From Scyliorhinus canicula (Eukaryota), in assembly GCF_902713615.1 (NCBI RefSeq), contig NC_052162.1, forward strand, positions 131,650,653 to 131,714,652: 64,000 nucleotides of DNA, in the 5' to 3' direction. The notes below the pieces were generated by a model. It saw only the letters and a program-made list of their open reading frames with translations, ran no database searches and was not told the DNA's origin. Both the position numbers and the translations under genes were made by a program. This document shows, in pieces, positions 11,682-55,735 of this stretch. How positions within the stretch are numbered: the stretch's first letter is position 1; every line of letters starts with the position of its first letter.

Positions 11682-12167
11682 CTGGAGAAACCATGGAAAT
11701 GTGGGGACTGTGGAAAGGGATACTGTTTCCCATCTGAGCTGGAGATTCATCGACGCAGTCACACTGGGGAGAGGCGGCTCACCTGCTCTCAGTGTGGGAA
11801 AGGATTTACTGAAGTATACAGCCTGCAGAAACACCAGCGAGAAGTTCACATTGGGGAGAAGCCATTCACCTGCTCTCAGTGTGGGCAGAGATTTGGTAAT
11901 TCATCCCACCTATTGAGACACCAGCGAATTCACACTGGGGAGAGACCATTCACCTGCTCTCAGTGTGGGAAAGGATTTATTGATTCATCCACCCTGCAGA
12001 CACACCAGCGAGTTCACACTGGGGAGAAGCCGTTCACCTGCCCTCAGTGTGGGAAGGGATTCACTCGGCTATCTCACCTGCACTCACACCAGCGAGTTCA
12101 CACTGGGGAGAGGCTACTCGCCTCTCAATGTGAGACGGGATTGCCTGTTTCACCACACCTGCTGTGA
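11682..12167 (+). CDS. C2H2 zinc-finger gene A (5 fingers plus a degenerate 6th); canonical ATG replaced by CTG, possible pseudogene
   Basis: [13 protein letters not shown]..., TGEKP/TGERP linkers; no in-frame ATG in the ORF. Confidence 0.7.
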
Positions 12168-12633
12168 CACCAACAATTTCACAATCGATTACAGGGGTTG
12201 GATTCTGCTGTTATTTCTACTCTACACCCAGGACTGCATTTTGTTCATTCTGACAGGTGGTCAGTGGGGATGGTCGGAGGGTTTCTTTCTGCTGGACTGG
12301 CCGGTCTCACCACTTTGCCTCTAGTGGGCTGATGCTCTTTGAGATTTGTTGCAAATACCTGGCTTCAAATTGCGCAAGGATCACAGAGTGAAAGGATGTT
12401 TGGAAAATTGACTATATTTAGTTGCCATTTCTGTTTGGAACCCCATAAAGCATGCCACTTTGCCATGGGGATGGGCCCTGGTGGTTACATGGTTCTTTTG
12501 TTTAATTTATCTGGGTCCCTCACAGAAGAAAACTATCTGGGTATGAGGGGCAAGTTGTCTGGGGTGGACTGGGAAACTGATTGCTGCAGGGAATACCTAA
12601 CATTTAAGGAATTATTTAATATTTATCAGGGGG

Positions 12634-14650
12634 AGGCAGCACGGTGGCACAGTGGGTTAACCCTGTTGCCTCATGGCGCCGAGGTTTGATTTTGATTTGA
12701 TTTATTGTCATGTACTGAAGTACAGTGAAAAATACTTTCTGCGGCTGAGGGAATGTACACAGTACGTACACAGTAGACAAAAAGAATAATCAACAGAGAA
12801 CATTGACAAATGGTACATCAACAAACAATGACTGGTTACAGTGCGGAACAAGGGGTCAAACAAAGCAAATACATGAGCAAGAGCAGCATAGGGCGTCGTG
12901 AATAGTGTTCTTACAGGGAACAAATCAGTCCGAGGGGGAGTCATTGAGGAGTCTTGTAGCTGGGGGGGAAGAAGCTATTCCTTTGTCTGGATGTGCGGGT
13001 CCTCAGACTTCTGTACCTTCTGCCTGATGGAAGGGTCTGGAAGCGGGCAATGCCTGGTTGGGAGGGGGGGTCTCTGATAATACTGCCTTCCTGAGGCAGC
13101 GGGAGGTTTGTCCAGAATCAATGTGGGTGTGGCAAGTTTGTGTGATGCGTTGGGCTGAGTTCACCACACTCTTGCGATCCTGGACCGAGCAGTTGCCATA
13201 CCAGGCTGTGATGCAGCCGGTTAGAATGCTCTCTTGCACATCTGTAAAAGCGTGAGAGTTGATGCAGACATGCCGAATTTCTTTAGCTTCCGTACGAAGT
13301 AGAGACGTTTTTGGGCTTTCTTGACTGTTGCATCAACGTGAGTGGACCAGGACAGTCTGTTGGTGATGGTGACCCCCCCCCCCCAGGAACTTAAAGCTAT
13401 CAACCATCTCCATTTCGGAGCCATTGATGCAGACTGGAGTATGTGTCGTGCTACGCTTCCTGAAGTCGATGATCAGTTCCTTGGTCTTTCCAACATTTGG
13501 AGAGAGGTCGTTTTCGGTACACCATGCAACCAAGTGATTTATCTCCCTATAGTCTGATTTGTCGTTGTTTGAGATACGGCCCACCACAGTCGTATCATCT
13601 GCAAACTTATAGATTGAGTTGATGTTAAATCTTGCCGCACAGTCATGTGTTTATAGGGAGTACAGTAGAGGACTGAGCACACATCCTTGCGGGGCTCCGG
13701 TGTTGGGGATTATTGTGGAGGAGGTGCTGTTTCCTATCCTGACAGATTGTGGTTTGTTGGTGAGGAAGTCGAGGATCCAGCTGCACAGGGAGGGGTCAAG
13801 TCCAAGATTGCAGAGTTTGGTTATTAGTCGTGTCAGGATAATGGTGTTGAAGGCAGAGCTGTAGTCGATGAACAGCAGTTTTACACAGTGTCCCTGATGT
13901 CAAGGTGTTCAAGTGTTGATTGTAGAGCCAGGGAGGTAGCATCTGCTGTGGACCGCTTGCAGTGATAGGCAAACTGAATGGATCAAGACCTGGGAGGCTG
14001 GCAGTGATCCATCTCATGACTGGCCGCTTAAAGCATTTATGATAACAGATGTCAGGGCCACCAGTCGGTCGTCGTTGAGACAGGCTACCTTGTTCTTCTT
14101 TGGTACTGGTATTATGGTGATCTTCTTGAAGGAGGGGGTATCTCAGAGCGGAGGAGTGAGATGTTGAAGACATCTGCGAATACACTCGCCAGCTGGTCTG
14201 CGCAGGTTCTGAGTGCTCGCTCAGGACTCCGTCGGGGCCCCTCGCTTTCCGCGGATTCACTTTCAAAAAGGCAGCTCTTACCTCTGGGTGGCACTGATAT
14301 ATTGGCTGACTGCTCAAAGCAGGCATCGAACTTGTTCAGATCATCGGGTAGGGATGCTCCAGCCCGATATTCCGCCTGGCCTTGCTTTATAGCCTGTGAT
14401 CTTGTGTAGGCCCTGCCATAGTCGTCGTGGGTTAGTGTCGTTGGCCTGGGACTCTAGTTTGATGCAGTATTGGTCCCAGGTTCGATCCCAGCTCTGGGTC
14501 ACTGTCCGTGTGGAGTTTGCACATTCTCCCCGTGTTTGCGTGGGTTTCGCCCCCACAACCCAAAGATGTGCAGGCTCGGTGGATTGGCCACGCTAAATTG
14601 CCCTTTAATTGGAAAAAATGAATTGGGTAGTCTAAATTAAATTTTAAAAA
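12634..14650 (+). mobile_element. Short-tail SINE (12634-12685 + 14472-14650) split by a LINE; TSD TTATCAGGGGG
   Basis: 11-bp direct repeat at 12623-12633 and 14651-14661; halves rejoin as GCCGAGG|TCCCAGG. Confidence 0.8.
12686..14471 (-). mobile_element. Rex1/Babar-like LINE, 5'-truncated, frameshifted
   Basis: NPRKARGPDGV, LRTCADQLASVF, KTKELIIDFRK, RLYFVRKLKKFG, ESILTGCITAWYGNCS; (AATCA)n tail. Confidence 0.85.
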
Positions 14651-15784: not shown

Positions 15785-15975
15785 TCATGGGCGGGGCTTG
15801 GAGCACCGAGTGGGCAGGGCTTAGATCGCCGTCATTGGCTTCCTTACCCAATGACAGTGCATGTGCACTGCAGCATATCACCCTCGGGACTGGAAGACCG
15901 AGCGGGACCGGCTGGTCCTCCAACCAATCGGAGTGAATGAGGGGCGGGGCTGAGCCTGGATCTCCCTCATTGGCT
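15785..15975 (+). promoter_or_regulatory. Orphan copy of ZNF promoter module (GC boxes, CCAAT)
   Basis: CTGGTCCTCCAACCAATCGGAGTGAATGAGGGGCGGGGCTGAGCC matches 38850, 39185-39230 (rc) and 52655. Confidence 0.6.
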
Positions 15976-17287: not shown

Positions 17288-17299
17288 CTTGGTGTGTGG

Positions 17300-17875: not shown

Positions 17876-20635
17876 TAGATAAATACAGCACAGAACAGGC
17901 CCTTCGGCCCACGATGTTGCGCCGAACTTTTGTCCTTGGTTAATCATAGAATTTTGGACAATTTTTCATGGCCAATCCACCCAACCTGCACATCTTTGGA
18001 CTGTGGGAGGAAACCGGAGTACCCGGAGGAAACCCACGCAGTCATGGGGAGGATGTGCAGACTCCACACAGACAGCGACCCAAGTCGAAATCGAACTTGG
18101 GACCCTGGATCTGTGAAGCAATTGTGCTATCCACAATGCTACCGTGCTGCCCTTAAGAAGTTAACCTACACTCCATTATTCTACCCTAATCCATGTACCT
18201 ATCCAATAGCCGCTTGAAGGTCCCTAACTTTTCCGACTCAACTACTTCCACAGGCAGTGCATTCCATGCCCCCACTACTCTCTGGGTAAAGAACCTACCT
18301 CTGACATCCCCTCTATATCTTCCACCATTTATCTTAAATTTATGTCCCCTTGTAATGGTGTGTTCCACCCGGGAAAAAAGTCTCTGTCTACTCTATCTAT
18401 TCCCCTAATCATCTTATAAACCTCTATCAAGTCGCCCCTCATCCTTCTCCGTTCTAATGAGAAAAGGCCTAGCACCCTCAACCTTTCCTCGTATGACCTA
18501 CTCTCCATTCCAGGCAACATCCTGGTAAATCTCCTTTGCACCTTTTCCAAAGCTTCCACATCCTTCCTAAAATGAGGTGACCAGAACTGCACACAGTACT
18601 CCAAATGTGGCCTGACCAAGGTTTTGTACAGCTGCATCATCACCTCACGGCTCTTAAATTCAATCCCTCTGATTTAAAAATAAATAAATTTAGATTACCC
18701 AATTATTTTTTCTATTAAGGGGCAATTTAGCGTGGCCAATCCACCTACTCTGTACATTTTTGGGTTGTGGGGGCGAAACCCACGCAGACACGGGGAGAAT
18801 GTGCAAACTCCACACGGACAGTGACCCAGAGTCGGGATCGAACCTGGGACCTCAGCGCCGTGAGGCGGTTGTGCTAACCACTACCCCACCGTGCTGCCCT
18901 CAATCCCTCTGATAATGAACGCTAGCACACCATAGGCCTTCTTCACAGCTCTATCCACTTGAGTGGCAACGTTCAAAGATCTATGAACATAGACCCCAAG
19001 ATCTCTCTGCTCCTCCACATTGCCAAGAACCCTACTATTAACCCTGTATTCCGCATTCATATTTGTCCTTCCAAAATGGACAACCTCACACTTGTCAGGG
19101 TTAAACTCCATCTGCCACTTCTCAGCCCAGCTCTGCATTCTATCTATGTCTCTTTGAAGCCGACAACAGCCCTCCTCACTATCCACAACTCCACCAATCT
19201 TCATATCATCTGCAAATTTACTGACCCACCCTTCAACTCCCTCATCCAAGTCGTTAATGAAAATCACAAACAGCAGAGGACCCAGAACTGATCCCTGTGG
19301 TACGCCACTGATAACTGGGCTCTAGGCTGAATATTTGCCATCCACCACCACTCTCTGTCTTCTATCGGTTAGCCAGTTTGTTATCCAACTGGCCAAATTT
19401 CCCACTATCCCATGCCTCCTTACTTTCTGCATAAGCCTACCATGGGGAACCTTATCAAATGCCTTACTAAAATCCATGTACATTACATCCACTGCTTTAC
19501 CTTCATCCACATGCTTGGTCACCTCCTCAAAGAAGTCAATAAGACTTGTAAGGCAAGACCTACCCCTCACAAATCCGTGCTGACTATCCCTAATCAAGCA
19601 ATGCCTTTCCAGATGCTCAGAAATCCTATCCCTCAGTACCCTTTCCATTACTTTGCCTACCACCGAAGTAAGACTAACTGGCCTGTAATTCCCAGGGTTA
19701 TCCCTATTCCCTTTTTTGAACAGGGGCACGACATTCGCCACTCTCCAATCCTCTGGTATCACCCCTGTTGACAGCGAGGACGAAAAGATCATTGCCAACG
19801 GCTCTGCAATTTCATTTCTTGCTTCCCATAGAATCCTTGGATATATCCCGTCAGGCCCGGGGGACTTGTCTATCCTCAAGTTTTTCAAAACGCGCAACAC
19901 ATCTTCCTTCCTGACAAGTATCTCCTCAAGCTTATCAGTCTGCTTCACGCTGTCCTCTCCAACAATATGGCCCCTCTCGTTTGTAAATACTGAAGAAAAA
20001 TACTTGTTCAAGACCTCTCCTATCTCTTCAGACTCAATACACAATCTCCCGCTACTGTCCTTAATCGGACCTACCCTCGCTCTAGTCATTCTCATATTTC
20101 TCACATATGTGTAAAAGGCCTTGGGGTTTTCCTTGATCCTACCCGCCAAAGATTTTTCATGCCCTCTCTTAGCTCTCCTAATCCCTTTCTTCAGTTCCCT
20201 CCTGGCTATCTTGTATCCCTCCAGCGCCCTGTCTGAACCTTGTTTCTTCAGCCTTACGTAAGTCTCCTTCTTCCTCTTAACAAGACATTCAACCTCTCTT
20301 GTCAACCATGGTTCCCTCACTCGACCATCTCTTCCCTGCCTGACAGGGACATACATATCAAAGACACGCAGTAACTGTTCCTTGAACAAGTTCCACTTGT
20401 GTCCTTCCCTGACAGCCTATGTTCCCAACTTCTGCACTCAATTCTTGTCTGACAGCATTGTATTTACCCTTCCCCCAATTATAAACCTTGCCCTGTTGCA
20501 CGCACCTATCCCTCTCCATAACTAAAGTGAAAGTCACAGAATTGTGGTCACTACCTCCAAAATGCTCCCCCACTAACAAATCTATCACCTGCCCTGGTTC
20601 ATTACCAAGTACTAAATCCAATATGGCCTCCCCTC
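17876..20635 (-). mobile_element. CR1 LINE, 5'-truncated, ORF2 largely readable
   Basis: [55 protein letters not shown]; carries SINEs at ~17960-18152 and 18674-18899. Confidence 0.92.
18674..18899 (-). mobile_element. Short-tail SINE inside CR1; TSD TCAATCCCTCTGAT
   Basis: 14-bp direct repeat at 18660-18673 and 18900-18913. Confidence 0.88.
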
Positions 20636-21871: not shown

Positions 21872-23038
21872 TCAGCTCATATCGTGACTGAGTGATTCCC
21901 TTCCCACAGCATCGATGTTCGGTCTCGGCCCTTTGTGAACTTTCGCCTTAGTGTGACTTCGCTGATGTCTGAACAGGCTGGATGTCTGAGTGAATCCCTT
22001 CCCACACACTGAGCAAGTAAATGGTCTCTCCCTGGTGTGAACACGCTTGTGTATATGGAGATTCGATGAAGACATGAATCTCTTTCCACAGTATCTGCAG
22101 TTGAATGGTCTACCCTTGGAGTGCATTCGTTGGTGTAACATGAGCCTGGCTGACTGAGTGAATCCCTTCCCACAGGAGCAGCTGAACAATCTCTCCCCAG
22201 GATGGACACACTGGTGTGTTAGCAAGTAGGATGACTGAGTGAATCCCTTCCCACACTCCGAGCAGGTGAATGGCCTCTCCCCAGTATGAATCTGCTGGTG
22301 TTTCACAAGGTGGGATGACTTAGAGAATCCTTTCCCACATACGGAACAGGTGAATGACCTCTCCCCAGTGTGAACTTGTTGGTGCATCAGAAGCAGATAG
22401 GACAAGGTGAATCCTTTCCCACATTCAGAGCAGATAAATGGCCTCTCCCCAGTATGAACCCGCTGGTGTGTATGCAAGCTGGATACCTGAGTAAATCGCT
22501 TCCCACACGTGTAGCAGGTGAAAGGCTTCTCCCCAGTGTGAACTCGCTGGTGTGTAAGCAGGCTGGATAACTGAGTGAATCCCTTCTCACACCTGTAGCA
22601 GATGAATGGCCTCTCCCCAGTGTGAACTCGCTGGTGTGTAAGCAGGTTTGATAACTGAGTGAAACCTTTCCCACACTTGGAGCAGGTGAATGGCCTCTCC
22701 CCAGTGTGAACCCGCTGGTGTGCAGTGACGGCGGAAGAACAAGTGAATCCCTTCCCACAAGTGCAGCAGGTGAATGGTCGCTCCCCAGTGTGAGTGTATT
22801 GGTGTGCAGTGAGGGCAGACGAATGCCTGAACCTCTTTCCACAGAAAGTGCAGCTGAACGGTCTGTCTTCTGTGTGAATTCGTTGGTGTGACATCAAACC
22901 AGCTGATCGAGTAAATCCCTTCCCACACTCAGAGCAGGTGAACGGTCTCTCTCCTGTGTGAATACGTCGGTGGGTTTCCAGCAGGCATCGATAATTGAAT
23001 CCCTTCCCACAGTCCCCACATTTCCATGTCTTCTCCAT
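21872..23038 (-). CDS. C2H2 zinc-finger protein B (388 aa, 13 fingers, no effector domain)
   Basis: Intact ORF from [14 protein letters not shown]; finger 11 has CxC spacing; frameshifted 14th-finger remnant at the end. Confidence 0.92.
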
Positions 23039-23393
23039 AGTACTGGTGTCCTTGTATCTCTCAAGTTCAGACGATCAGTTGAAGACTTGTCCACACAGAA
23101 TACTTGAACGTTTTTTCCTGTATGTGAATGAAGCAGGCTGTGTAATTGGTTCAAACACTTTGCACAGTCAGCATACTGGAACACTGTCACTCAGATGTGT
23201 GTGTGTGTCTCTGTGCTCTTCCAATCACACTGACCGTTGAACTTTTCTCCCACAGGTAGAACAGAGAAACATTTCTCCTTCCACATTCAAAGACCATTGA
23301 TATCCAGGTACTGATGAAGCCATTAATTTGGCCAGATGCTGCTGTAATATTTGGTTTGAGTTTCCAGTCTTTGAATCCTCCCCTTTTAATACC
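23039..23393 (-). other. ZNF B exon leader (acceptor TTTTACAG|G), uORF 23272-23225, stop 23077-23075
   Basis: Homologous to the other four leaders. Confidence 0.7.
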
Positions 23394-23659
23394 CTGTAAA
23401 AGGTGTTTACAAACTATCAGTGCAGGATATAAATTCCGAACAGACAATTCTAGTTTCTCTGGAACATTTTTTTCCTTTCTTGTTCCCCCAAAGCTGTAAA
23501 TCCCCGTCCCAGATATTCTCCCTCCTCCCTGGGCTGAAATCTAAACCCATCTCACCATCTCCACCCAATTTCTTTCCTCTGCCTGGGTTCAGTTCTCCAG
23601 CCCCTGTCTGCAGACTGACAATAAAATCAATGGGTCAATCTTTTTCTCTCCTGGTCACT

Positions 23660-24190
23660 GGAACCCTGAAGCCCCGCCCACTCGGTGTTACGTCACCAAT
23701 ATGGCCGCACAAGCAGCCAATTCGCCGCTGGACCAAGATGATAACCGTCAACCCGGGCCTGCACCTCGTAAAAGCCTTGTCGCCTCAAACGGGCCTCCTG
23801 CAGCTGTTTGTTTAGGATTTGCGGCCTACACCGGGTGTCATTGAAGCCTCCTCGCCCTCCCGCCGCATCCACCTCCCTCCCGCGCACCGCCGCTCCTCAC
23901 CGTCAGCCAAGTAACAAACGTGTCACCTTCACACATACTGCGCATGCTCGGAACACTGCGCGGTACTGCGCATGCTCGGAACACTGCGCGGACCTGCGCA
24001 TGCGTTCCCGTTCCCTGTTGTGGGGACATTCTCCACCGCGGGGTCTCCTGGGTATTCGACCATTGTTCCCCTCACAGCTTCTCGGACGCATTGCGCATGC
24101 CCCGCGCAGACCGGCACGTTCTGAGAGCGGCCTTCCCGCGCCTGCCCGTCTCTGCCATTCTGAGAGAATGACGGCATCACCCGCGTGGTG
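23660..24190 (-). promoter_or_regulatory. CpG-island promoter of ZNF B with tandem NRF1-like TGCGCATGC motifs
   Basis: High CpG density; 28-bp repeat 23936-24004; CCAAT and GC boxes; candidate donor CG|GTGAGG near 23900. Confidence 0.7.
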
Positions 24191-24639
24191 CATTATGGAT
24201 AGTGCATAGTGCACCTTCTTTCAGATTCATGTGTCACAATAATAGAATAGTGTAAAACAGTGAACAATATCACTCCCAATCCCTACCAGTCTCTCTCTAA
24301 ATGATTATGGTAATTGCACTAATTCATTTGATTACTTTTTTAAATGTTGCTTAGGGATGGGACAGTGCCACAGTGGTTAGCACTGTTTCCTCACTGCGCC
24401 AGGGACCTGGGTTTGATTCTGACCTTGGGTGACTGCCTGGATTTCTCACTTTCACCCCATGTCTGCGTGGGCTTCCTCCCAGTGCTCCGGTTTCCTCCCG
24501 CAGACAATGATGTGCAGGTTATGTGTGATTACTGGGATAGGGCAAGTCGGGGTGCTCTTTCAGAGGGTTGATGAAGATTTAATTGGTTGAATGGCCTCCT
24601 TCTGCACTGTAGCAAATCTATGATTCTAAAACTCAATTT

Positions 24640-31780: not shown

Positions 31781-31784
31781 CATT

Positions 31785-38679: not shown

Positions 38680-39500
38680 CTCAAGCACCGCCCACTCCCG
38701 GCTGTTCCACCAAGAAGGCCGCACGTGAAGCAAACAAGCACCTCAGCTGCAAACCAGGGAGCTGCCAATGATTCTGAAGGGTTTCCTCCAGCTCACAATG
38801 CCCGGGAGTGATTGACAGCAGGTACTGACCAATGGGACGAACTCGAGCGGCTGGTCTTCCAACCAATCAGAGTGAATGGATGGGGCAGAGCCTTGGGCTC
38901 AATGTCTGCGCATGCGCCAGGCCAAACACAGTCGCCCGAGGAAGATGGCGGCCGTGAACTCGGGCCTGTGTCGGGGAAAAGCCCGAGCAGCTCTCGCCGG
39001 TTCAAATGCCGTATCTCAGCCGCATTGGAGGTTTCAGGCCTGCGCGGGGTGTTTATGAAGCCTCCCCACTCTCACGCTGGCTCTATTCCTCCCTGAGGAC
39101 TCACCCGACGGCGTGTCACAGCCAAAACTTTCAACGCAACCGCCTCAATCCTGAGCAATGAACGGCTCTGTTCGGGGCCCTCCGGGCTCAGTCCCGCCCC
39201 TCGTTCACTCCGATTGGTTGGAGGACCAGAAGCGTCCGTTCGGTCCTCCAGACTCACCCGTTGCATTCTATTGGTCCAGAGGTGCCGTCAATCATTCCCG
39301 TCCATTGTGAACTGGAGCATGCGCAGTACCGACGCTGGGCTCGGCCGGGAGGTTTCACTGAAACCCGGTGGAGGCTCCAAACCCCAATAAGAAGTTTCCG
39401 GGCCCGGGTTTGCATCGAGCGGGGGGACAGCTGCGGCCTGCTCCCGGTGACAGGCCTGAGTTAACGGCTTTTTAGAGGCTGCAAACCCGCAGGGGGCAAA
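38680..39500. promoter_or_regulatory. Bidirectional CpG-island promoter between ZNF C (-) and D (+)
   Basis: Inverted pair of CCAAT modules (38791-38895 + and 39185-39312 -); NRF1-like TGCGCATGCGC ~38907 and ~39318; YY1-like AAGATGGCGG 38942. Confidence 0.75.
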
Positions 39501-39569
39501 ACATCAGAGATCGAGTTTGTTGTGAAACCCCCAATGGGATATTGTAAAACAGGAGGTCAGGATTACAGT

Positions 39570-40330
39570 CAACAACAACAACTTCTATTTATATAACACC
39601 TTTAACATCATAAATCATCCCAGTCAACTTCGCAGGAACATTATAAAACAAAGTGAGACACCCAGACACAAAAGGAGATATTAGGACAGGTGACCAAAAA
39701 CCTGATTAAAGAGGTGAGTTTTAAATTGAGTCTTAAAGGGGGAAATTGATGTGGAGACGGGGAGGTTTTGGGAGGGAATCCAGTGCTTGGGGCCGAGGGA
39801 ACTTAAAACCATGGCCGCAAGTGGCACACTAGAGAGTGCACAAGTGGCCAGGATTTGAGGTGTGCAGATATCTCAGCGGGTTATGGGGCTGGAAGAGATT
39901 CCAGTGAGGGAGAGATGAGGCCATGGAGGGATTTGAAAACGGGTGGGAATTGACTGGGAGCCAATGCAAGTCAGGAAGCAGAGGGGTTAACGGGGAAAAT
40001 AAATTACTGTGAATTATGTTTGCAGATGTTTGGGTGACTTCAAGTTTATGGGAGAATGTGAGAGAGCAACCAGGAATGTATTGGAACAGTCAAGTCTGCA
40101 GCATACAGAAGCATGAATTGGCTTTAGAACCAGATGCATTGAGTCAGTAAGTGGAAACAGGCAGTCTTAGTGATGGCATAGATATGAGATCAGAATCTCA
40201 TCTTGGGATCAAATGTGACACTGAGGTTGCAATGGGACTGTTACCAGGGAGAGGGGTGGATTCGGTATTTTGGGAATGGGGATTGGAGTAGGGACTGAAA
40301 ACAGTGGCTTCAGTTTTCTCAATATTTAAT
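39570..40330 (-). mobile_element. Old L2-like LINE 3' fragment
   Basis: (AAC)n-TTCTATTTATATAACACCTTTAAC tail; degenerate body. Confidence 0.5.
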
Positions 40331-40788
40331 TTGAGTTAATTAGGCAACAGGAAGAGAACCAGGAATCAGAATAGGCCCTGAGACTGATATCAGGCTTAAC
40401 TTAGTTGGAGTAGTACAGCAAGGACAGAAATCCTGGGAGGTTTGGAGAAACCACCTTCATGATTGCTCATTAAATCTCCACACAGTTAGTTCTAAACACA
40501 AGTCTGTTATTCTGCCTGGTCGGTCAGGGTGATTCAGATCAATGTTTGTCACAAGACAGCATTGAAGTGAATTATCAAACATGTTGTTACGTTAGTTGTA
40601 TAAATTTGTTCAAAGAGGAAAGAAAGAATTATCTGACACTTTATTTGGATTTCAGACCAGGGAGGAGGGTGTGTGGGATGGGGATTTACAGCTTTGGGGG
40701 AACAAGACAAAAAAATGAAACTAAAACTGTTAATTCTGAATTTCTATCCTGGACTGACAATTGTGACCGTTGAAAATTCCTTTTACAG

Positions 40789-41113
40789 GATATTAGGAGA
40801 GGATTTGTGCAAAGGAAAATGAAACCAAACTTCACTTCAAGGTCTTCAGAGTCAACAGGACTTGGACATTCTCAGACTTTGAATATGGAAAGAGAAATGT
40901 TTGTCTGATCTGCCGGTGTGTAAATATTTAAAACATCAGTGTGACTGGAAAAGCATCGAGACCCAGACACACATTGAGTGAGAGTGTTCTCGTAAACTGA
41001 CTGTGGAAAGAGGTTTAACCAGTTACACAGCCTGAAAAAACATTACACCATTCACAGTGAGGAGAAACCATACACGTTCTGTGTGTGGACAAGATTTCAA
41101 CTGATAGTCCAAC
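40789..41113 (+). other. ZNF D exon leader (acceptor TTTTACAG|G), uAUG 40897, stops TGA-TAG 41102-41107
   Basis: Homologous to the other leaders. Confidence 0.7.
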
Positions 41114-41815
41114 ATGGAGAGACAAGATGACACCGACATCATTGAAAAAACATGGATATGTGGGGACTGTGGGAAGGCATTCACTTGCCCATCCAAGCTG
41201 GAAACTCATCGACGCGTCCACACCGGGGAGAGGCCCTTCAGCTGCTCTTTATGTGGGAAAGATTTCACTCAGTCATCTAACCTAGCGTTACACCAGCGAG
41301 TTCACACTGGAGAGAGGCCGTACACCTGCTCTGTCTGTGGGAAAGGATTCATTCAGTCATACAATCTAGCATTACACCAGCGAGTTCACACTGGGGAGAG
41401 GCCATTCACCTGCTCTGTATGTGCAAAGGGATTCGTTAATTCATCTAACCTAGTGGCACACCAGCGAGTTCACACTGGGGAGAAACCATTCAGCTGCACC
41501 TCCTGTGGAATGAGCTTTAGGCTTTCATCCACCCTGCTGAAACACCAGCGAGTTCATACTGGGGAGAAACCATTCAGTTGCCCTGACTGTGGAAGGAGCT
41601 TCAGGCACTCGGGCAGTCTCATTGTACACCAGCGCGCTCACACTGGGGAGAGGCCATTCACCTGCTCCATGTGTGGGAAGGGATTCACTGATTCATGCCA
41701 ACTGCTGAGACATGAACGGGTTCATACTGGGGAAAGGCCGTTCACCTGCTCTGAGTGTGGCAAGGGATTCATTGATTCATCCCAACTGCTGAAACACCAG
41801 CGACGTCACAAGTGA
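41114..41815 (+). CDS. C2H2 zinc-finger protein D (233 aa, 8 fingers)
   Basis: Intact ORF with TGERP/TGEKP linkers. Confidence 0.92.
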   Translation: MERQDDTDIIEKTWICGDCGKAFTCPSKLETHRRVHTGERPFSCSLCGKDFTQSSNLALHQRVHTGERPYTCSVCGKGFIQSYNLALHQRVHTGERPFTCSVCAKGFVNSSNLVAHQRVHTGEKPFSCTSCGMSFRLSSTLLKHQRVHTGEKPFSCPDCGRSFRHSGSLIVHQRAHTGERPFTCSMCGKGFTDSCQLLRHERVHTGERPFTCSECGKGFIDSSQLLKHQRRHK

Positions 41816-42729
41816 CTCAGGGATTGGATTCTGCTATTATTGCTGCTGTTATTGACAACCAGGCCCGAATCACATTAGTTCTGACAGATGGGGTTTGTTT
41901 CTGCTAATATTAATCCACTGTTTTACTGGGCTAGACTTTATTATTCTGGATCCATAGCTGATTGTGTTCTCGGGGCTGCAGTGTCACTTCTGGAAACGCT
42001 GTCTATGATCTTTCCCCATAATCCAGGAAGTCCCATCAGAAATTAGTTCACAACAAGATTCTGGACTTTTACTTCAATCTCAAAATTGATATTTTGTGTG
42101 AAACTCTATAATTGAGTGTCTGAAAGTTCTGCTGATTAACATCTTCAATTAGAAAGTGCTGATTAATCCTTGTGACAATTCTTACTGACCTGTACATTAC
42201 ACACAGAGACACCTCTGTTATTGGCCAGTGAGACGGGAATTGGTGGAGAATCGAGCATTCCCGAATGTTATCCTCCCATCTGATACAGAAATCCTTCGGC
42301 ATGGGAATAGAGACAAGTTGAATCCAAGTAACAACTATAAGAAATGGCTATCTAAAAACCATATAATATCTTTTGCGATTTATGGAATATTTACAGAAAT
42401 AGCTCACTCTCATAAAGAAAGCTTCCCCAGCAGCTTTCTGGGTGATGAACACAGGACAGACCTGTTCCCTCTGCCAAGGGTATAACTCTAGCAGGGCCCT
42501 GAAACAAGAGATTTCTAACCCCTGATACGATTGGATCTCAGGACACAGAGCCTAAAGCAGTTGTCTGTCTGTGAATGTTGAAACAGGCTCTCAAGAGCAA
42601 ATAGATTTTGAAGTGATCGACACTGACTTTAGGCCAACACGACACTCTGGCTCACACCAAGTAGCTGTTCAGAGGAGAATGCCGTCACCAGCTACAGAGA
42701 CCAGAACTCACTCATCCGTCCGTTGGTCC

Positions 42730-46294: not shown

Positions 46295-49200
46295 TTTAAT
46301 GTTTTGTGTTTTTTATACGAGTTTTGTTAGTGATGACCTGCTCCGTTTATCTACACGCAGCAGGAATATAACCCTGCATCCGCTGCCTATTCTGGCGTAA
46401 AGTACGGCGTGACAACTAAGTAAAAGAACAAAACTGAGGGACAAAATCAAAAGGGGGGTGCTCCAAAAAGAAAGCAACCGGAGCACAGCCCAAAAGGAAT
46501 CAGAAAGGAAACGGAAACTTAACAAAACCCATCAAATCACGGAACGCCTCAAGTGTGCCCGTGGACACCGCATGCCTCCGCTCCAGGAACACCCGGTCGC
46601 GAACAAGGCTGCGGAAGATGGGCAGACAGGTCGGATGACCCCCCTCGGTCGCCCGCTGCCTGGACCTATTAGCAGGTTTGGCCAGGCCCAGGAGCAGCTC
46701 ACGAGAAGGTCCACTGCCTTCCCCACCCCCTTTCGTACCGGATCTCCGTAGATCAGGAGCTTGGGGCTGAAGTGCAAAGAAAACCTCAACAACTGTCAAG
46801 AAACCAAAAAGAGAGTGCAGCCTTGGACAGACAACATAAACGTGCTCCTCGGTCTCCGACAGGTCGCAAAAGTGGCAGGTCTCTGGGGAGGCCGTGTAGT
46901 GGCTTAACCTACTGGTTCACGGCAATGCCTTGTGCAGCACCCTCCACCCCAGGTCCCCAGGTTTTATAGGGAGGATGCCTCCGTAGAGGGATTTCCAGTG
47001 GAGGCCTCGGATGGCTTTGGCCACGCACTGGACGGACACCACTCTGCGCTCGGCTAACACATAGGGCATCATCCAGCCCACCCCTCCAACACCCAGCATG
47101 TCCCCAATCCTGGTCACCGCGGCATCCACAGCCCTCCACTCTGACAGCCACCGGAATGGATATTGGCAGAGGTACGGATTCCTGAGCAGCGGCTCCCTTA
47201 CGAGAGCCACCACTCCTAACAGGGGAGAGCTGTGGGGCATCGCGATCATGTTCCAGACTTTGAGAAGGTCCTGGTACAAGACGGGAAGTGCCAACAAAGA
47301 ACTCCGAAGACCCTGCTGGTCGACGAACAGGAGTTGCACGTTGTAGTTCAAGCCGTGAACCTGGCGGAAGAAATACGTCGCCAGGGCACACCATCGTGGA
47401 GGAGGCTCAACGTACAGGTATCGCTGCAGAGTCTGAAGACGTAGAGTCGCGATCTGGGTGCATTGGCATACCAGCGCCTGTAGCCCTCCGCAATCGGGAG
47501 ACTCAAGACCTCTGCAGCGACCCTCTGCAATCCATTGTCCCAGAAGAACCGAATCAGAGTTCTCTGGCTGCGTGTGACAAAGTCAGGGGGAGGGGTCAAA
47601 GTGACCAGCCGATACCACAGCATGGAGGCAACCAGCTGGTTTATGACGAGAACTCGACCCCTGTAGGACAGCACTCAGAGCAGTCCTGTCTAGCGGCCTA
47701 GGCAAGTGGTGACCTTGGTCTCCAGTTCCTGCCAGTTTGCCGACCAGGCTTCCTCTGCCGGGCAAAGATAGACTCCCAAGTAGAGGATGTTGGTCAGGCT
47801 CCAGCTGAAGGGTCTGAACTCCTCTGCGGGGGTGGGGGGGTCATTTGCCACAGACCAGGAGTCCGGAACACTTAGCCCAGTTGCTCCTAGCAGAAGACGC
47901 GACAGAGAAAACAGCCTGGCACTCTCGCATCCTCCGCAGGTCACCGGGGTCAGTGAACATGAGGAGCACGTCATCAGCGTCAGCCGAAAGGACCACCACC
48001 ATGCCCGGCTCGCGCAGAACGAACCCCGACAACCTCCTCCGCAGGAGGCGCAGGAAAGGCTCCACACAGAGAAAGAAGTTGGCCGGACAAAGGGCAGTCC
48101 TGACGCAAAGCGATTATCGTAAATGGTGTGGTCTGGGACGACGTAGGACTGGTCAGGGTGGATCATGGTGGACCATTTTAGATGGCCACAAGAGATCAGA
48201 ATAAAAGTTCCTGACTGGAGTTCTGACCCCCTCCGGATCCGAGACGAGGGACCCGTCGTCGGCCAGCAGCGAAGAAACCCCAGTGAGTAGAAGAAGGGGA
48301 TGCCGCAGAAGACTGATCCGCGCCCTCACGTACGCGCCGTGGGACCCGACAAGTTGCAGGTCCCGCAGTGTACCCTTCTTCTCTCTGTACACCAGCCCCA
48401 GGGCCGGGTCCAAATCGGGCTGAGCAAGACGTGACTCCAGATCAAAGACTTCTTCAGCCAATTTGGTGATCTTGGATTTCCGCCCGGCAGTAGACCCCTT
48501 CGTGTACCCCTGACAGAAGGCACGACGTGAGTCTTGCCCACGTTCCACCATCGCCTCAAGGAGGGGAAGTCACCCCGCTTCCTTCTCCAGCCGGCCCAGA
48601 AGCGGCGTAATGAATCCAGGAACCACTCGTTCTCCAGCAGCACATTGTTAAAGTGCCAGTACGCGGACCGTGTCTGAGTGCGGGTAGGAGTGAGCCCCGC
48701 TCACACCAGGTGGTGATCGAAGCACAGCACCTGCTCCACAGAGGCCGTCGGAACACTGGGCAAGTAAGTCTTAGAAATGTAAAGACGGTCGATTCTGGAC
48801 GTGCCGAACAGAGGGCGCACAAACATGTACACCCGCGATTCAGGATGGAGAGTTCGCCAGACATCCACCAAGCTGACCAGGTCCCTCAACTTCACCACCG
48901 CCTGCATGTTCCGCTGGACTCTACCACGGTTCTTGTCCTGGAGGGTGCAATTGAAATCCCCTCCGAAGGCGATGCACTCGCCCACAGGGATGGTGCCAAG
49001 AAGAGTGGACACTTTGTCAAATAAAGTCGTCTGCTGCGGCCCGGCCCGGGGAGCGTATACATTCACAAAGTGAAGCACCACGTCTCCGTCGCGGACTGTT
49101 AAATGCAACAGACAGCCTGGCACTGTATCCTTGACCCTCAAGATCTCGGGCTGAAAATGTGGAGCCAACAAGATAGCCACGCTGCCCGATCGTGGGGCCA

Positions 49201-52140
49201 AGTGACTTATGAAGATCCCATTGCCACTTAGCTTCGTCCCCCGGAATGGTGTGGGTTTCTTGCAGGAAGCACACCACGCACTTTCCGTCCCGGAGGACAG
49301 CGAAGCACTGGAAATGGTGAAGCGCGTCCTTGCTGCCATGGATGTTGAGGCTGGCTATGGTTACCTCCATGTCAGTTGTAGCGTGTATCCTTCACCAACC
49401 ACCCGGAACTCGCAGGAGGTAGAGGGTTGCCGCCCAATCCACTCCCTCAGGAGCCCCGCGAGGAACAGGACAGCTTGGTGCTGCCCCCCTGGTCCTGATC
49501 GAATTCCCGTGCCTCTCTGGCATAGACGTTGGTGGTCTTGAGGTGCAGCCCCAGATTTCGCCAGCTGTCCAGGGCTAGCCGCACACAGTCCTGGTGACCG
49601 TGATGCTTTTTCAAAAACGCTCGGAGTTCCCAGAGGGGATGAGGGGAGACTCGGTGCCGGACGTAAGGGCGCCCTCTGCCTTGCTGCAGAGAGGGACTAA
49701 ATCCTCCTCCTCACCCGTCAACGAGCAGCTGTCCTCCTCCGAGTGTCACCGCCTGGCTCGAGTCCCCCGCCACATGGAGTGTGGCGGGAAAACGGTCCAT
49801 CGGCTAGCCCTTGGCCCGAGTCGATCCCGCCCCCAGGATCACCCTCAGACAGGTTCCTCACAGGCTCCCCAGCAATTCAGGGTCTGTGGACGGTGGCGCC
49901 TCCGACCCTGACTCCGCGTCAATGCCGGGCTCTCGGAGAGACCCCGGAAGACCCCAGGAACAGCTCCGGGATGGAACCTGGGCTCCCTGGCACCGTCTGC
50001 TTGGGTGTTGCGAGCGGGGAGCCTTCCTTTCCGTCGCCCGCCCACGACCTGAATATGTAAGGGCACTGGGGGCTGCTGCTGGCCACCGCCGATGAACAAA
50101 ACGAGGTGACCGGTGAGTAAAACTGCATCGGACGGAACAAGTTCTCGGGGGTCGCGTCGCCACCCGGCCCCGGGCCATCTGGGATTGTGGCGAGGCCGGA
50201 ACAGCCTCCAGCTAAGGGCTGTACACAGGGTCTACACCGCCCTCCGGAGCACGTGTGGTGGTCTCTCCGGACCCCTCAGATTGTTGCGGTGCGGCGGCGG
50301 CGTCCCGAGGTAAGGCTGCATTCTCGGAGTTGGTCTGGGCGGGCACGAGATCAGTAGTTTTGACAGGGTCTGGATGGGCCTGGTCCGACCAGCGTGCCGT
50401 CTTTCGTCTGGCCTTTTCAGGCCATCTCTGGTCCAGTGGAGGCTCCCTCTCCCCCTCCCCAGACCACCCTCCCGAAGGCCGAGCTTTAGCGGCACCACCC
50501 CGGACCAAACCTCCCCCAGTAGGTTGAGATGGGGGAGGAGCTCGGTGGGGAGTCAGGGCGGGACGTTGGAAAGAACGACACGTTCGGCGGTGGCCTCCAG
50601 CGGGTCTACTACCACGTGTGTCCCGCCCACCGTGAGCCCCCTTTCCAGGACACGGTGGACCGCCTGCTCGGCCCGCAGGAAAAACACAGCCTTGCCGTAC
50701 ATCCACGAGGCGGCTACGAGGGTCCCACGACCCCGGCCATCACACGAGTGCACGCCTCGATGGTCATGGTGGGGTGGGCACAGCACTTAGAACATAGAAT
50801 ACAGCACAGTACAGACCCTTCAGCCCACAATGTTGTGCCGACCACTTATCCTAATCTAAGATCAACCTAACCTACACCCCTTCAATTTACTGCTGTCCAT
50901 GTGCCTGTCCAAGAGTCGCTCAATGTGCCTAATGACTCTGACTCCACCACCTCCGCTGGCAGTGCATTCCACACACCCACCACTCAGTGTAAATAACCGT
51001 TTGGATTAAAATCCCCTCCCGAATCCCTCTCCACAGCATCAAAATTTTGTGGCGGTGTGTTACAGTTCACTCGGAGCCCCAGGTTGCTGTGACCCCATGC
51101 ACTTTTACATGCGTGCTGTAGTCTGGAGCTAGTCATGGACGGTGATACAAAGACCAAAGAAAATTACAGCACAGGAACAGGCCCTTCGGCCCTCCCAGCC
51201 TTCGCCGATCCAGATCCTCTATCTAAACCTGTTGCCTATTTTCCAAGGATCTACCTCCCTCTGTTCCCCGTCCGTTCATATGTCTGTCTAGATGCATCTT
51301 AAATGATGCTATCGTGCCCGCCTCTACCACCTCCGCTGGCAAAGCGTTCCAGGCACCCACCACCCTCTGCGTAAAAAATTTCCACGCAAATCTCCCTTAA
51401 ACTTTCCCCCTCTCACCTTGAAATCGTGACCCCTTGTAATTGACACCCCCACTCTTGGCAAAAGCTTGTTGCTATCCACCCTGTCCATACCTCTCATAAT
51501 TTTGTAGACCTCAATCAGGTCCCTCCTCAACCTCCCGCCTTTCCAACAAAAACAATCCTAATCTACTCCACCTTTCTTCATAGCTAGCACCCTCCATACC
51601 AGGCAACGTCCTGGTGAACCTCCTCTGCACCCTCTCTAAAGCATCCACATCCTTCTGGTAATGTGGCGACTAGATGGAAGACGATCCCACTTTCTTACCA
51701 ACTGCCCAGGAATCTCTCTCGTTCCCAATGCCGTGTGTTGAAAGGGTTTACAGGTTGACAATCAACCTGTTTGACCACGTTATGGAGGTGTTACCTTGGC
51801 CATCAAGCCCCAAATTGCCGTGTCAATAGGCGGAAGGGCAAAGGGGCAGCGGAGGGTTGAGAGGCTGCTGCCCCTGCATAGGTGGTCCTTGGCCACCCTG
51901 CCCCCCGGCAGAGGGGAATGCCCCTGGGGTGCTGCCCATGCCCACACCTGGGACAACCGGGCCCTGTATCCAGGTTCAGGGTGGTAGGGGGAGGGGGGGA
52001 ATGGATGTGGCACCGCAACAGCTGGTGCCACAAGGGAAGGTGCTGCAGGGCAACAGCAGGTGGCGACTATGAGCGGGGCACCGTTCTTCAGCCCTGGAGG
52101 GGCCTAAAGCAATGACCCAGGCTGCCCCACAGCCGGTGAA
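46295..52140 (-). mobile_element. Near-full-length Tx1-clade LINE (ORF1 + APE/RT ORF2), degenerate, interrupted by CR1 fragments at 50790-51670
   Basis: APE: MEVTIASLNI..FLQETH, GGDFNC, SRIDRLY; RT: ADADDV, LYLGVY, LSYRGRVLVINQLVASMLWY; ORF1: ASWMYGKAVFFL. Confidence 0.85.
51148..51670 (-). mobile_element. CR1 LINE 3' fragment
   Basis: DLIEVYKIMRGMDRV...TRGHDFKV. Confidence 0.8.
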
Positions 52141-52204
52141 AAGGTGGGCGGACGGCGCTCTTCAGCCCTGTTGGGGCCAAAACAGAACCCTTGGTCTTCA
52201 CAGC

Positions 52205-52495
52205 AACCCCAGGTAGTCCCACTCCCACCTCAGGCAGAGGGGTGGGAGGACAGAGTCTGCAGTCCCAGGTGGTCCCACCTCAGGCAGAGGGGCGGGAGGA
52301 CAGAGGGCAGGGTCTGCAGTCCCAGCTGGTCCCACTCCCACCTCAGGCAGAGGGATGGGAGGACAGAGGGCAGGGTCTGCATTCCCAGGCGGTCCCACTC
52401 CCACCTCAGGCAGAGGGGCGGGAGGACAGAGGGCAGGGTCTGCAGTCCCAGGTGGTCCCACCTCAGGCAGAGGGGTGGGAGGTCAGAGGGCAGCA
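52205..52495. repeat. G-rich minisatellite, ~60-66-bp unit, ~4.5 copies
   Basis: CCCACCTCAGGCAGAGGGGCGGGAGGACAGAGGGCAGGGTCTGCAGTCCCAGGTGGT repeated. Confidence 0.88.
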
Positions 52496-52574
52496 GGAGT
52501 GGGGAGGGGAGGGACAGAGACAGGAACAATCAGCCAGTTAGCCTGAGCCTATGGCCGCTCTCACCATCTGTAAC

Positions 52575-52995
52575 CGTCACAATGCCCGGGAGATTGACGG
52601 CAGCTCCCGACCAATAGGCTGAGAGGGGCGGGTCTGGAGGACCGACCTTGAGTGGCTGATCAACCAATCGGAGAGAATGAGAGGCGGGGCCCGCTGTGAT
52701 TGAAGCATGCGCAGTGTGGGTAGCGGCGACGCAGAGGGTGTTGGGGTGTTTCCTTCAGATCTGAAATTGGTATGAAGCAAGTAACAATATGGAGGGAGCG
52801 AGAGATTGCGGGGGTGGGCGGAAACGTTATGTAAAGGTGTTGTGAGCCGCAATCCTCGGAAAAGAGCTCACTTGACTAATTTTGTTCTGAGCGGACCTGC
52901 AGCTCCTCATCGTCGGCTCGGGTTAACAGCCGCCATCTTTATTGGATGTGCATCAGGGCGCATGCGCGTTTCTCATCTTTGTCGGGGCGATGTTT
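52575..52995 (+). promoter_or_regulatory. CpG-island promoter of ZNF E
   Basis: Same two-CCAAT/GC-box module; NRF1-like GCATGCGCA ~52705 and GCGCATGCGC ~52958; YY1-like CGCCATCTT ~52931. Confidence 0.7.
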
Positions 52996-54578
52996 CAATG
53001 AGTGGGAGGAGCTTGTTCCCCATTGTTCAGAATGGAGACAACTTGTCCATCAAACTGGATTAGTCCAGTGATGGATTTTTAATAATGATTATTATATTAC
53101 TATAATTTGGGGAAAAGCTTTTTCAAGAAGATTCGCAGCTCCACAAAGTGTTTCCAACTTCTCAAACCAATCTCCTGAACAGGTTTACCCATTTATTTGA
53201 CTAAAACGATGGTCCCTGGTCGCATTGTGGCACAGCGGTTAGCACTGCTGCCTCACGCACCAACGACCATAACCTTTATTGTCACAAGTAGGCTTACATC
53301 AACACTGCAATGTAGTTACTGTGAAAAGCCCTTAGTTCCCACATTCCGGCGCCTGTTCGGGTACACAGAGGGAGAATTCAGAATGCCCAATTCACCTAAC
53401 AAGCACGACTTTTGGGAATTGTGGGAGGAAATCGGAGCACCTGCAGGAAATCCACGCAGACGTGGGGAACGTGCAGACTCCGCACAGACAGTGACCCAAG
53501 CCGGGAATCGAACCTGGGGCCCTGGTGCTGTGAAGCAACAGTGCTAACCATTTAGTATAATTTAGCATATTCCAGTTTGGGACCCGGGTCACTGTCCATG
53601 TGGCGGTTGCACATTCTCCCCGTGTCTGCATGTGTCTCACCCCAAAGATGTGCAGGGCAGCTGGATTGGCCACACTAAATTGCCCCTCAATTGGAAAAAA
53701 TAATTGGTTATTCTGAATATATTTTTAAAAAAGATGGTCTCAATTAAAGTGGTGGGTTCCCCAGGAGATGGTTGACATTTCAGGGAACAGTAGATTAATA
53801 ATGGACCGAGATATGTCTCGTGTTGTTGTATGGCACAGATTAAATATATTACTTAAGGCTCTGTAATAAAGTAAATTTATGATTATTTCTTGCCTTGTAT
53901 TTTAAGACTGTAGCTACATTATAGATTTCCAGTCATCTCTTCCCTCAGAGGGTTGTTAGTCTTTGGATTTCTCTTCCACAGGGACCAGTTGTATCTGGGG
54001 ATCATTAAATATATTGAAGCACAATTTTGACAGATATTTTATTGACAATGGAGTTAAGGTTATGGGGAACAGGTTGGAAAATAGAGAGAAAGCTGAGATG
54101 AGGAGGGATCTCTTCACTCGAGGATGTGGGGAAGCTTTGGAATTCTGTACTCTAGAGGAATGTGGAGCCTCAGTCATCAGGTATGTTCAAGCCAAATATT
54201 TATAGGTTTCTAGATATTGAGGGATATGGGGATCGTGTGGGAAAATGGTGCTGAGGTAGATCGGCCAAGGTTGAATGGTTGAACAGACTTGGTGGGCCGA
54301 ATGGCCTACTCTTCCTCCTATTCTAATCTCTGTGTCCTGGTCAGGAAGCAGTGAGCTGAGCTTTGATCTGTCAATCAACATGAATCAGCACCTTCAGGAG
54401 AATTGGGAGGGTGGATATTAGATACAGCAGAGTGAGAATGGAGGGAGATTGTGTGGGATGGAGATTTACAGCTTTTGGAGAACAAGAGAGGAAATAATGT
54501 TCCGTAGGAACTCAAATTGTCTGTTCTGAATTTCCACTCTGCTCCAACAATGATGACTTTTGCAAATTGGTTTTAAAG

Positions 54579-54952
54579 GATATTGGAAGAGGAGAAATTA
54601 TAGACAGAAATCTCAAACATCACGTTGCAATGTGACAAACTCACTCGACTCCTTCTGATCTGAATATCATCGGGCTCTGAATATCATCGGCGAGAAGGAG
54701 AAATGTTTGTCCAATCTGTCGGCTTCAACTGTGGATACATCAGTGTGACTGGAAAAGCACTGAGACCCACAAAACACACACACCCGAGTGAGAGTGTTCC
54801 AGTGAACTGACTGTGGAAAGAGCTTTAACCAGTTACACAGCCTGAAAAAGTATCACACCATTCACAGCGAGGAGAGACAGTGCACATGTTCTGTGTGTAG
54901 ACAAGGCTTCCACTGATTGTCCAATCTGGGGAGATACGAGGAGACCCAGAAC
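54579..54952 (+). other. ZNF E exon leader (acceptor TTTTAAAG|G), uAUG 54703, stop 54914-54916
   Basis: Homologous to the other leaders; closest to A. Confidence 0.7.
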
Positions 54953-55735
54953 ATGGAGAAACCGTGGAAATGTGGGGACTGTGGGAAGGGATACTGTTTC
55001 CCATCTCTGCTGGAGATTCATCGACGCAGTCATACTGGGGAGAGGCCATTCACCTGCTCCCAGTGTGGGAAGGGATTCACTCAGTTACCTCACCTGCAGG
55101 CACACCAGCGAGTTCACACTGGGGAGAAGCCATTCACCTGCTCTCAGTGTGGGCAGAGATTCACTCAGTTATCCAGCCTGCAGGCACACCAGCGAGTTCA
55201 CACTGAGGAGAAGCCGTTCACCTGCTCTCAGTGTGGGCAGGGATTCACTCTGTTATCCAGTCTGCAGTCACACCAGCTTGTTCACACTGGGGAGAGGCCA
55301 TTCACCTGCTCTCAATGTGGGAAGGGATTCATTTATTCATCAACCCTGCGGAAACATCAGCGAATTCACACTGGGGAGAGGCCATTCACCTGCTCTCAAT
55401 GTGGGAAGGGATTCATTTATTCATCAACCCTGCAGAGACATCAGCGAGTTCACACTGGGGAGAGGCCATTCACCTGCTCTGAGTGTGGGAAGGGATACAG
55501 TGATTTATCGACCCTGCAGACACACCAGCGAATTCACACTGGGGAGAGGCCATTCACCTGTTTTCAGTGTGGGAAGGGATTCCGTGCTTCATTCACCCTG
55601 CAAAGACATCAACGAGTTCACACTGGGGAGAGACCATTCACCTGCTCTCAGTGTGGGAAGGGATTCAGTGATTTATCCGCCCTGCAGACACACCAGCGAA
55701 TTCACACTGGGGAGAGGCCGTTCACCTGCTCTTAG
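54953..55735 (+). CDS. C2H2 zinc-finger protein E (260 aa, 9 fingers), ended by a premature TAG in finger 10
   Basis: ATG at 54953 ([10 protein letters not shown]); TGC TCT TAG TGT GGG AAG; remainder of the array at 58100-58232. Confidence 0.85.

Follow-up and report, generated by a model that had tools for sequence, protein, structure and literature searches.

The key to understanding fast-evolving clusters of genes with many tandem zinc fingers (poly-ZNF genes) has been the effector domain, which is KRAB in tetrapods and FiNZ in cyprinids. To our knowledge, KRAB-ZNF genes are absent from sharks. Here we describe a stretch of 64,000 nucleotides from the catshark Scyliorhinus canicula (NCBI RefSeq assembly GCF_902713615.1, contig NC_052162.1, positions 131,650,653 to 131,714,652 of the forward strand), in the following called the window, which contains five arrays of C2H2 zinc fingers, Z1 to Z5. 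We consider it likely that the five belong, as paralogs, to a lineage-specific family of C2H2 poly-zinc-finger genes that occurs across sharks, here in a decapitated form, that is, without its former N-terminus, and that three of them, Z2, Z3, and Z4, are selected genes for fingers only.

The KRAB-ZNF system has been reviewed (PMC10380595). FiNZ is a translated N-terminal domain of 28 amino acids, and knock-down derepresses transposable elements (TEs; Wells et al. 2023, PMC10547256). TE-linked, lineage-specific expansions of ZNF genes are known across animals (PMC10547256). Sharks are not mentioned in the main text of the FiNZ paper (PMC10547256), and we found no paper describing a fingers-only ZNF family of sharks. 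Genes consisting only of C2H2 fingers and the loss of effector domains are already known in mammals (PMC2443715), where the domain-less ZNF genes are more often singletons and the losses sporadic (Tadepally et al. 2008, PMC2443715).

The five open reading frames (ORFs) lie on both strands and hold, by a regular-expression count, 5, 13, 7, 8, and 9 fingers (Z1 to Z5, respectively). These counts agree with an earlier sequence-only reading of the window, which had described five ORFs as starting almost directly at finger 1. Finger 1 is preceded by 4–15 codons in each ORF, and in-frame stops are located directly upstream of every ORF. Of the 42 fingers, 40 are canonically spaced (the 5 first fingers together with 35 of the others), the spacing of finger 11 of Z2 being broken to C-x1-C; the zinc ligands are invariant in all 40, and the linker consensus is TGE(R/K)PF. 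Taking tandem C-x2-C-x12-H-x3-H fingers with TGE(K/R)P linkers as the definition, all five arrays are of the Kruppel type, and Pfam zf-C2H2 and zf-H2C2_2 match them at E values of 1e-31 to 1e-80. The search of the five ORFs against Pfam returned C2H2 finger families alone, with 0 matches to KRAB (PF01352), SCAN (PF02023), or BTB (PF00651). As the sequence-only reading had also claimed, the helix positions vary among the paralogs, the per-position entropy across fingers peaking at about 3 bits at the contact positions −1, +3, +5, and +6, and the first finger is conserved. In all five copies the ORF starts at or near MEKPWKC, and the constant residues of finger 1 are W-x-C, E at +5, I/T at +6, and H-R-R (L-E-I/T-H-R-R).

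Three of the five copies are intact. Z2 (21872–23038, minus strand) opens with an ATG at 23038 and comprises 388 codons. Z3 (ORF 37213–37839, from the ATG 37213–37803, minus strand) opens with an ATG at 37803 and ends with HQRVHK-stop, and Z4 (41114–41815, plus strand) opens with an ATG at 41114 and ends with HQRRHK-stop; HQRVHK/HQRRHK followed by a stop is the normal end of the family. In Z2 this usual stop after the last finger is absent, and 26 extra codons precede a new stop (21872–21950). Lesions are found in the other two copies. Z1 (11646–12167, plus strand) is a probable pseudogene with no in-frame ATG, the ATG of the family being CTG here, and its ORF stop lies in a decayed sixth finger. 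Z5 (ORF 54917–55735, ATG-started 54953–55735, plus strand) is a truncated, probable pseudogene with a nonsense TAG inside finger 10 (55733–55735). Fourteen bases past this TAG begins a repeat insertion of about 2.35 kb (55750–58099) with copies of a short interspersed nuclear element (SINE) in it; the array homology ends at about 55749 and resumes at 58100, where the detached end of Z5 (58100–58667, plus strand) holds what is left of finger 10, then a decayed finger 11 and 3′ flanking sequence, with 73% identity to the end and flank of Z1 (12059–12634). Fingers 5/6 and 7/9 of Z5 (55300–55735) are 96% and 94% identical in DNA, which points to recent internal duplication or conversion. A six-frame finger scan of the window gave no sixth finger gene; the extra matches were the detached decayed finger at 58164–58226 and a stop-bearing dead finger upstream of Z2 (23201–23263). 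The proposal of a five-gene cluster thus holds for the number of finger arrays, but two of the five genes, Z1 and Z5, are probably dead.

The stretch between a conserved splice acceptor and the start codon, here called the leader, measures 310–360 nt per copy and is the decayed 5′ coding part of the gene itself, as judged from translations and a five-way alignment. Its order is an acidic motif of about 40 residues, three dead fingers (F-3, F-2, and F-1), and a linker ending in MEKPWKC. The acidic stretch is related to LEGE.LQ..SN.TS.QDLTESLDSSG.EYHRPLN.EGE; it is broken or strongly diverged in all five copies, with stops or frameshifts in Z1, Z3, and Z5. The Z1 leader (10951–11645, plus strand), likewise a dead N-terminal motif and dead fingers, contains an inserted SINE (11139–11536) and aligns seamlessly with the other four once this insertion is taken out. 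In Z2 the leader (23039–23400, minus strand) starts with the conserved acceptor TTTACAG (23400–23394) and holds the dead motif, the dead fingers, and five upstream ATGs (uATGs). The Z3 leader (37804–38139, minus strand) starts with the acceptor TTTCCAG (38139–38133) and has six uATGs, whereas that of Z4 (40800–41113, plus strand), again with dead motif and dead fingers, has three. In the Z5 leader (54600–54952, plus strand) the motif and the three dead fingers stand in a single frame with the ORF, interrupted by four stops. Overall the leaders contain 2–6 uATGs each, all opening short upstream ORFs. Mean identity among the five copies is 0.79–0.85 in certain blocks of the leader, equal to the conservation of the coding start, and about 0.5 in the adjacent blocks.

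Three stops are shared among the leaders. The first is a TGA after 'SV' in the helix of F-3, present in all five copies; the second is a TGA or TAA replacing the first Cys of F-2 in Z1, Z4, and Z5; the third is a TGA (TAA in Z1) in the helix of F-1, again in all five copies. In Z4 the stops are found at 40942–44 (TGA), 40993–95 (TAA), and 41102–07 (TGA TAG), with two codons between this last pair and the ATG at 41114. Stops at common places in five leaders indicate that the common ancestor of the five was already decapitated. The description of the genes as effector-less stands insofar as the ORFs are fingers alone according to Pfam, but the state is a derived one, with a dead motif and three dead fingers upstream. 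The conserved finger called the first in the sequence-only reading is, with three dead fingers ahead of it, the fourth in ancestry.

The transcripts of Z3 and Z4 were followed by mapping reads and contigs to the region 36600–42400 (Z3, the shared promoter island, and Z4), using three contig sets guessed to be RNA (X1, X4, and X6) and one stranded run of raw reads. Contigs of two runs (X1 and X6) contain a GT..AG joint 39713>40800 (reported as 39710>40797, cut +3). This joint defines a noncoding exon 1 of Z4 (39316–39713, plus strand, donor after 39713, 5′ end unmapped), an intron of 1086 nt (39714–40799, plus strand), and an exon 2 that is entered 314 nt before the ATG, upstream of all leader stops. 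A suspicion that exon 1 might be a common repeat was not upheld, as no second copy of it was found within the window. The depth is about 50–250 in exon 1 and about 90–170 at the start of exon 2, drops about 20-fold after 39713, and is 0–6 in most of the intron, a pattern that fits RNA rather than DNA. Contigs cross the Z4 stop unbroken into the 3′ untranslated region (UTR; 41741–42400 and beyond, at least 1 kb) with 0 mismatches and a depth of 71–83, so that the main form gains no C-terminal exon. For Z3, 3′ UTR contigs (36728–37103, depth 12–18) were obtained, the stranded reads fitting a minus-strand RNA, and a contig over the leader (37842–38035) has 0 mismatches. The GT..AG joint sets the sense of Z4, over which the reads of the stranded run map to the minus strand; over Z3 they map to the plus strand, so both genes are transcribed in sense; the strand switches near 39300, where the depth is low. 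Over the finger arrays and the middle dead finger the depth reaches 10^4–10^5, which reflects very many expressed paralogs and not this locus, and over 40868–41061 the RNA-like depth is as high as over the arrays.

The sequence-only reading had held that no upstream exon can add an N-terminal domain, and this is upheld by the Z4 acceptor at 40800, which lies upstream of several in-frame stops. Splicing of an effector exon downstream of the stops, the event that reading had named as evidence against itself, was not seen: the Z4 joint enters before them, and the joints listed for 36600–42400 include no canonical one within the leader. Nor are the genes silent, as far as Z3 and Z4 are concerned, given the sense stranded reads, the spliced Z4 contigs, and the 3′ UTR contigs.

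Relatives in other species were sought with a query of the leader and finger 1 only. A whole-array search with the Z2 protein had been tried as a kinship test and was discarded as uninformative, returning only generic KRAB-ZNF and PRDM9 arrays of tetrapods and teleosts. With the leader and finger 1, relatives of 62–86% identity over this part were found in eight elasmobranch genera, namely in Mustelus, Carcharodon, Scyliorhinus torazame, Heterodontus, Cetorhinus, Chiloscyllium, Pristiophorus, and the sawfish Pristis. Some of the gene models start at MEKPWKC (P0121, P0129, and P0134, such starts occurring in Mustelus and Chiloscyllium), others have one extra intact finger before MEKPWKC (P0126, P0137, and P0141), and others carry the acidic motif in frame (P0125, P0136, P0151, and P0155). 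The N-termini of ten shark relatives contain no Pfam domain. Two RefSeq models, P0179 from Heterodontus francisci and P0171 from Pristiophorus japonicus, terminate exactly after QTSV, which is the position of the TGA in the five copies of the window. This comparison across species rests on the end points of protein models. Because these two species and the catsharks represent three shark orders and span Galeomorphii and Squalomorphii, the truncating stop probably arose before the crown of modern sharks, that is, before Galeomorphii and Squalomorphii separated.

We asked whether the open state of the arrays could be expected by chance. With the close pair Z1/Z5 left aside, any two leaders are separated by Jukes–Cantor (JC) distances of 0.28–0.41 and by 4–8 indel events, mostly frameshifting. 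From the leaders, neutral rates of 0.17 substitutions and 0.0084 frameshifts per site and lineage were taken. At these rates none of 5000 simulated histories kept Z2, Z3, or Z4 open; the real ORFs of 196–388 codons are without frameshift or premature stop. For finger 1 the ratio of nonsynonymous to synonymous rates (dN/dS) is 0.11–0.50. In close finger pairs the corresponding ratio of proportions (pN/pS) is 0.37–0.42 for the scaffold, and the contact pN over the overall pS is 1.0–1.6 (6 independent or 24 overlapping pairs, with small counts). The contact residues change at about the synonymous rate, and the counts are too few for a claim of positive selection. With 0/5000 simulations and a scaffold pN/pS of about 0.4, Z2–Z4 have stayed open far beyond what neutrality predicts, and the view that they are kept open by selection is supported.

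The alternative that survives best, though we think it unlikely, is that the copies are transcribed relics heading to death, their ORFs being open by youth or by conversion from complete members and yielding no useful protein. Two of the five copies do carry disabling lesions, the leaders are rich in uATGs, an exact look-up of the proteins in a protein collection found none of them, and the near-identity of the Z5 fingers indicates ongoing internal duplication or conversion. However, ORFs of 196–388 codons are still open next to leaders that have diverged this far and gathered many frameshifts, the scaffold is constrained, and a truncating stop common to two further shark orders speaks for a truncated form that has lasted long.

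According to the reading that we prefer, each gene consists of a CpG-island promoter (common to Z3 and Z4), a noncoding first exon, an intron of about 1 kb, and one large exon. The large exon opens with the leader as a dead ancestral N-terminus closed by stops, which leaves as the only possible start of translation an ATG that precedes the W-K-C finger by four codons (in Z4 it is situated another 11 codons upstream). Judged from the sequence, the product is 7–13 tandem fingers and nothing else, Z1 and Z5 decaying and Z2–Z4 being intact; the intact copies most likely make fingers-only DNA-binding proteins. Contact with DNA would be made by the fingers, in which the contact residues are replaced at about the neutral rate. 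Having no recruiting domain, the proteins might act by occupancy (the steric block of the sequence-only reading), by competition, or through partners bound by the fingers, perhaps by finger 1, for which that reading had proposed such a role. Young TEs are plausible candidate targets.

Several points weigh against this reading. The 2–6 uATGs per leader mean that translation of the main ORF is not assured, and gene conversion from selected paralogs could hold the ORFs open without selection on these copies themselves. The four ATG-started proteins, looked up as exact sequences, were absent from a collection of 15 billion proteins. A TGG>TGA change that recurred might account for the shared TGA; P0177 and P0203 (species unknown) read W at this place. 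That the contig sets X1, X4, and X6 represent RNA is a guess, the contig with the joint has one mismatch to the window, and the read evidence covers Z3 and Z4 alone of the five copies. As the array depth is dominated by paralogs, the case for expression of this locus itself is built on the UTR contigs and a single joint. In a far-reaching version of our reading, a nonsense mutation before the crown of sharks removed three fingers along with the N-terminal module, and the gene so shortened founded a large family of fingers-only genes under selection; the fossil N-terminus was kept as a structured leader, with its upstream ORFs and conserved dead-finger blocks, that controls translation or docks family proteins, and the family faces TEs or regulates itself without a fused effector; we regard this version as improbable.

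A second alternative is considerably more doubtful. A minor or stage-specific isoform could splice out the dead fingers and join the acidic motif and a start in exon 1 to the W-K-C finger, giving a FiNZ-like module. The motif, which is acidic, rich in Ser/Thr, and about 40 residues long (LEGE.LQTGNSNQTS.QDLTESLDSSGPEYHRPLN.EGE), stands at the beginning of the finger exon in relatives of several shark orders (P0125, P0155, P0151, P0136, and P0171–P0194), without a Pfam match and, in some models, in frame with the fingers. A profile of it gave 35 matches among 1.84 billion representative proteins; two were unrelated repeat proteins, and the 33 left come from several shark orders, those looked up by name being shark proteins. 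In the Heterodontus models P0125 and P0155, LER..DT.T-MEKPWKC follows immediately on the motif, the dead fingers being absent, and in Z4, though in this copy alone, an AG directly follows the last stop. Against such an isoform stand the broken or diverged motif in all five copies of the window and the lack of a canonical joint within the leader among the joints listed. Moreover, the relatives read the motif region in differing frames, many motif matches are naive calls of short ORFs reading through the acceptor, and the MAAVN starts of models from other sharks coincide with a YY1-like promoter motif.

This YY1-like motif, AAGATGGCGGC, is located at 38942 and 52929 and matches the 'MAAVN/MAAIN' starts of models in other sharks (P0151, P0124, P0125, P0171, and P0179 are concerned). 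In antisense it corresponds to a '...TAAIF...' stretch inside P0171 and P0179. We rejected 'MAAVN...' as a real N-terminus: it coincides with AAGATGGCGGC in the island, the models diverge downstream except for one short stretch, and in the window the 'MAAVN' frame closes after 50 codons. The 'MAAVN' and 'TAAIF' N-termini in models of other sharks look like translated promoter or UTR sequence and hence like annotation artefacts. We also considered the upstream ORF (exon 1 plus motif) as a separate coding gene. For the copies of the window this was rejected with the motif broken in Z1, Z3, and Z5, and it is further undercut by P0171 and P0179, whose upstream parts share only the antisense YY1-like motif and no Pfam domain.

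Least probable of the alternatives appears to us that the dead-finger leader is a functional cis-regulatory RNA or DNA element for translational control or docking, in a family regulating itself rather than silencing TEs: although blocks of the leader are as conserved as the coding start beside blocks at about 0.5 identity, the translated middle dead finger shares about 70% identity with the Cetorhinus copy P0149, and the RNA depth over 40868–41061 matches that of the finger arrays, five copies are too few for a test of constraint, conversion or slow shark mutation rates could explain the conservation, and the element would be compatible with decapitated, selected finger genes in any case.

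CpG islands are situated 1.5–2.3 kb upstream of the ORFs. The island of Z1 (9801–10200; ratio of observed to expected CpG (o/e) 0.80, GC 0.63, about 1.5 kb upstream) is presumed to be a promoter remnant, and 9948–10269 matches 50789–50470 in inverted orientation with 71% identity. For Z2 the island spans 23601–24300 (CpG o/e 1.09), and 23578–23710 matches 38593–38724 with 76%. Z3 and Z4 share a head-to-head island promoter (38801–39600) with CCAAT boxes, imperfect palindrome arms at about 38800–38876 and 39204–39300, and the motifs GCGCATGCGC at 38908 and AAGATGGCGGC at 38942. The Z5 island (52601–53000) carries the YY1-like motif pointing away from Z5, and 52577–52690 matches parts of the Z3/Z4 island. 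Z3/Z4 is thus the head-to-head pair around a palindromic island with CCAAT boxes, its divergent transcription resting on few stranded reads, and Z1, Z2, and Z5 each have an island with no partner in the window. A scan for bacterial-type promoters and terminators, which is irrelevant to this genome, found nothing. At 15885–15960 we noticed an orphan arm of a promoter island (GATTGGTTGGA at 15919, minus strand) without an adjoining finger gene; it may be the remnant of a lost pair. In the place where a head-to-head partner of Z5 would be expected, a GC-rich, CpG-island-like block (46400–51400, GC 0.55–0.59) contains ORFs resembling those of long interspersed nuclear elements; its ORF 48701–49339 (minus strand) has no Pfam match at E 0.001.

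The TE-dense surroundings described in the sequence-only reading are evident from about 20 copies of a SINE repeat of about 200–260 bp, from reverse-transcriptase fragments (18881–20389 and 28799–29215), and from a DDE transposase fragment (1047–1502). Just left of the Z5 island, direct repeats of about 60–110 bp with 85–97% identity (52208–52493) hold a repetitive ORF rich in R/G/S. A simple or low-complexity CT-rich repeat of about 3 kb (6162–9106) with an AT skew of down to −0.85 gives long spurious S/L/C or E/R/Q ORFs on both strands. Near the right end of the window lies a further CpG island (63101–63800, o/e 0.99), in which GC-rich ORFs are open on both strands and in several frames; it may be the promoter of a gene past the window end.

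For the window alone, the result is modest. What the window contributes is the splice joint, the test against neutrally evolving leaders, and the stop common to shark orders. The family appears as a clustered one that has lasted in the form of bare arrays, probably from a time before Galeomorphii and Squalomorphii parted. If the proteins do act on TEs or on each other, the family would be a natural decapitation experiment that shows what an array is capable of without a recruiter, be it by occupancy, by competition, or by finger-mediated partners. There is also a consequence for annotation, as models in several shark genomes appear to choose the dead upstream ORF or a start in the YY1-like motif over the finger ORF.

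Compared with the KRAB-ZNF clusters of tetrapods, the locus shows the same tandem Kruppel-type arrays in repeat-rich DNA with birth-and-death turnover, the same single large exon with all fingers and a spacer of degenerate fingers ahead, and the same variable contacts on a constant scaffold. It differs in that no KRAB was found in the ORFs of the window or in the N-termini of the ten relatives, and the N-terminus is closed by stops here. With the cyprinid FiNZ-ZNF genes (PMC10547256) it shares a large, clustered, lineage-specific poly-ZNF family in a fish lineage outside the tetrapods, and a short acidic N-terminal sequence, which is here a dead motif in the leader and stands in frame in the models of some relatives. 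In contrast to FiNZ-ZNF proteins, the ORFs of the window have at most 15 residues before finger 1, too few for the 28 translated amino acids of FiNZ, to which the leader motif itself has not been aligned. The closest parallel in kind is the effector-less C2H2-ZNF genes of mammals (PMC2443715), in which the N-terminal part was lost or degenerated while the finger array persisted. Unlike these, it is the decapitated form itself that makes up the cluster in the catshark, and this form is apparently common to three shark orders.

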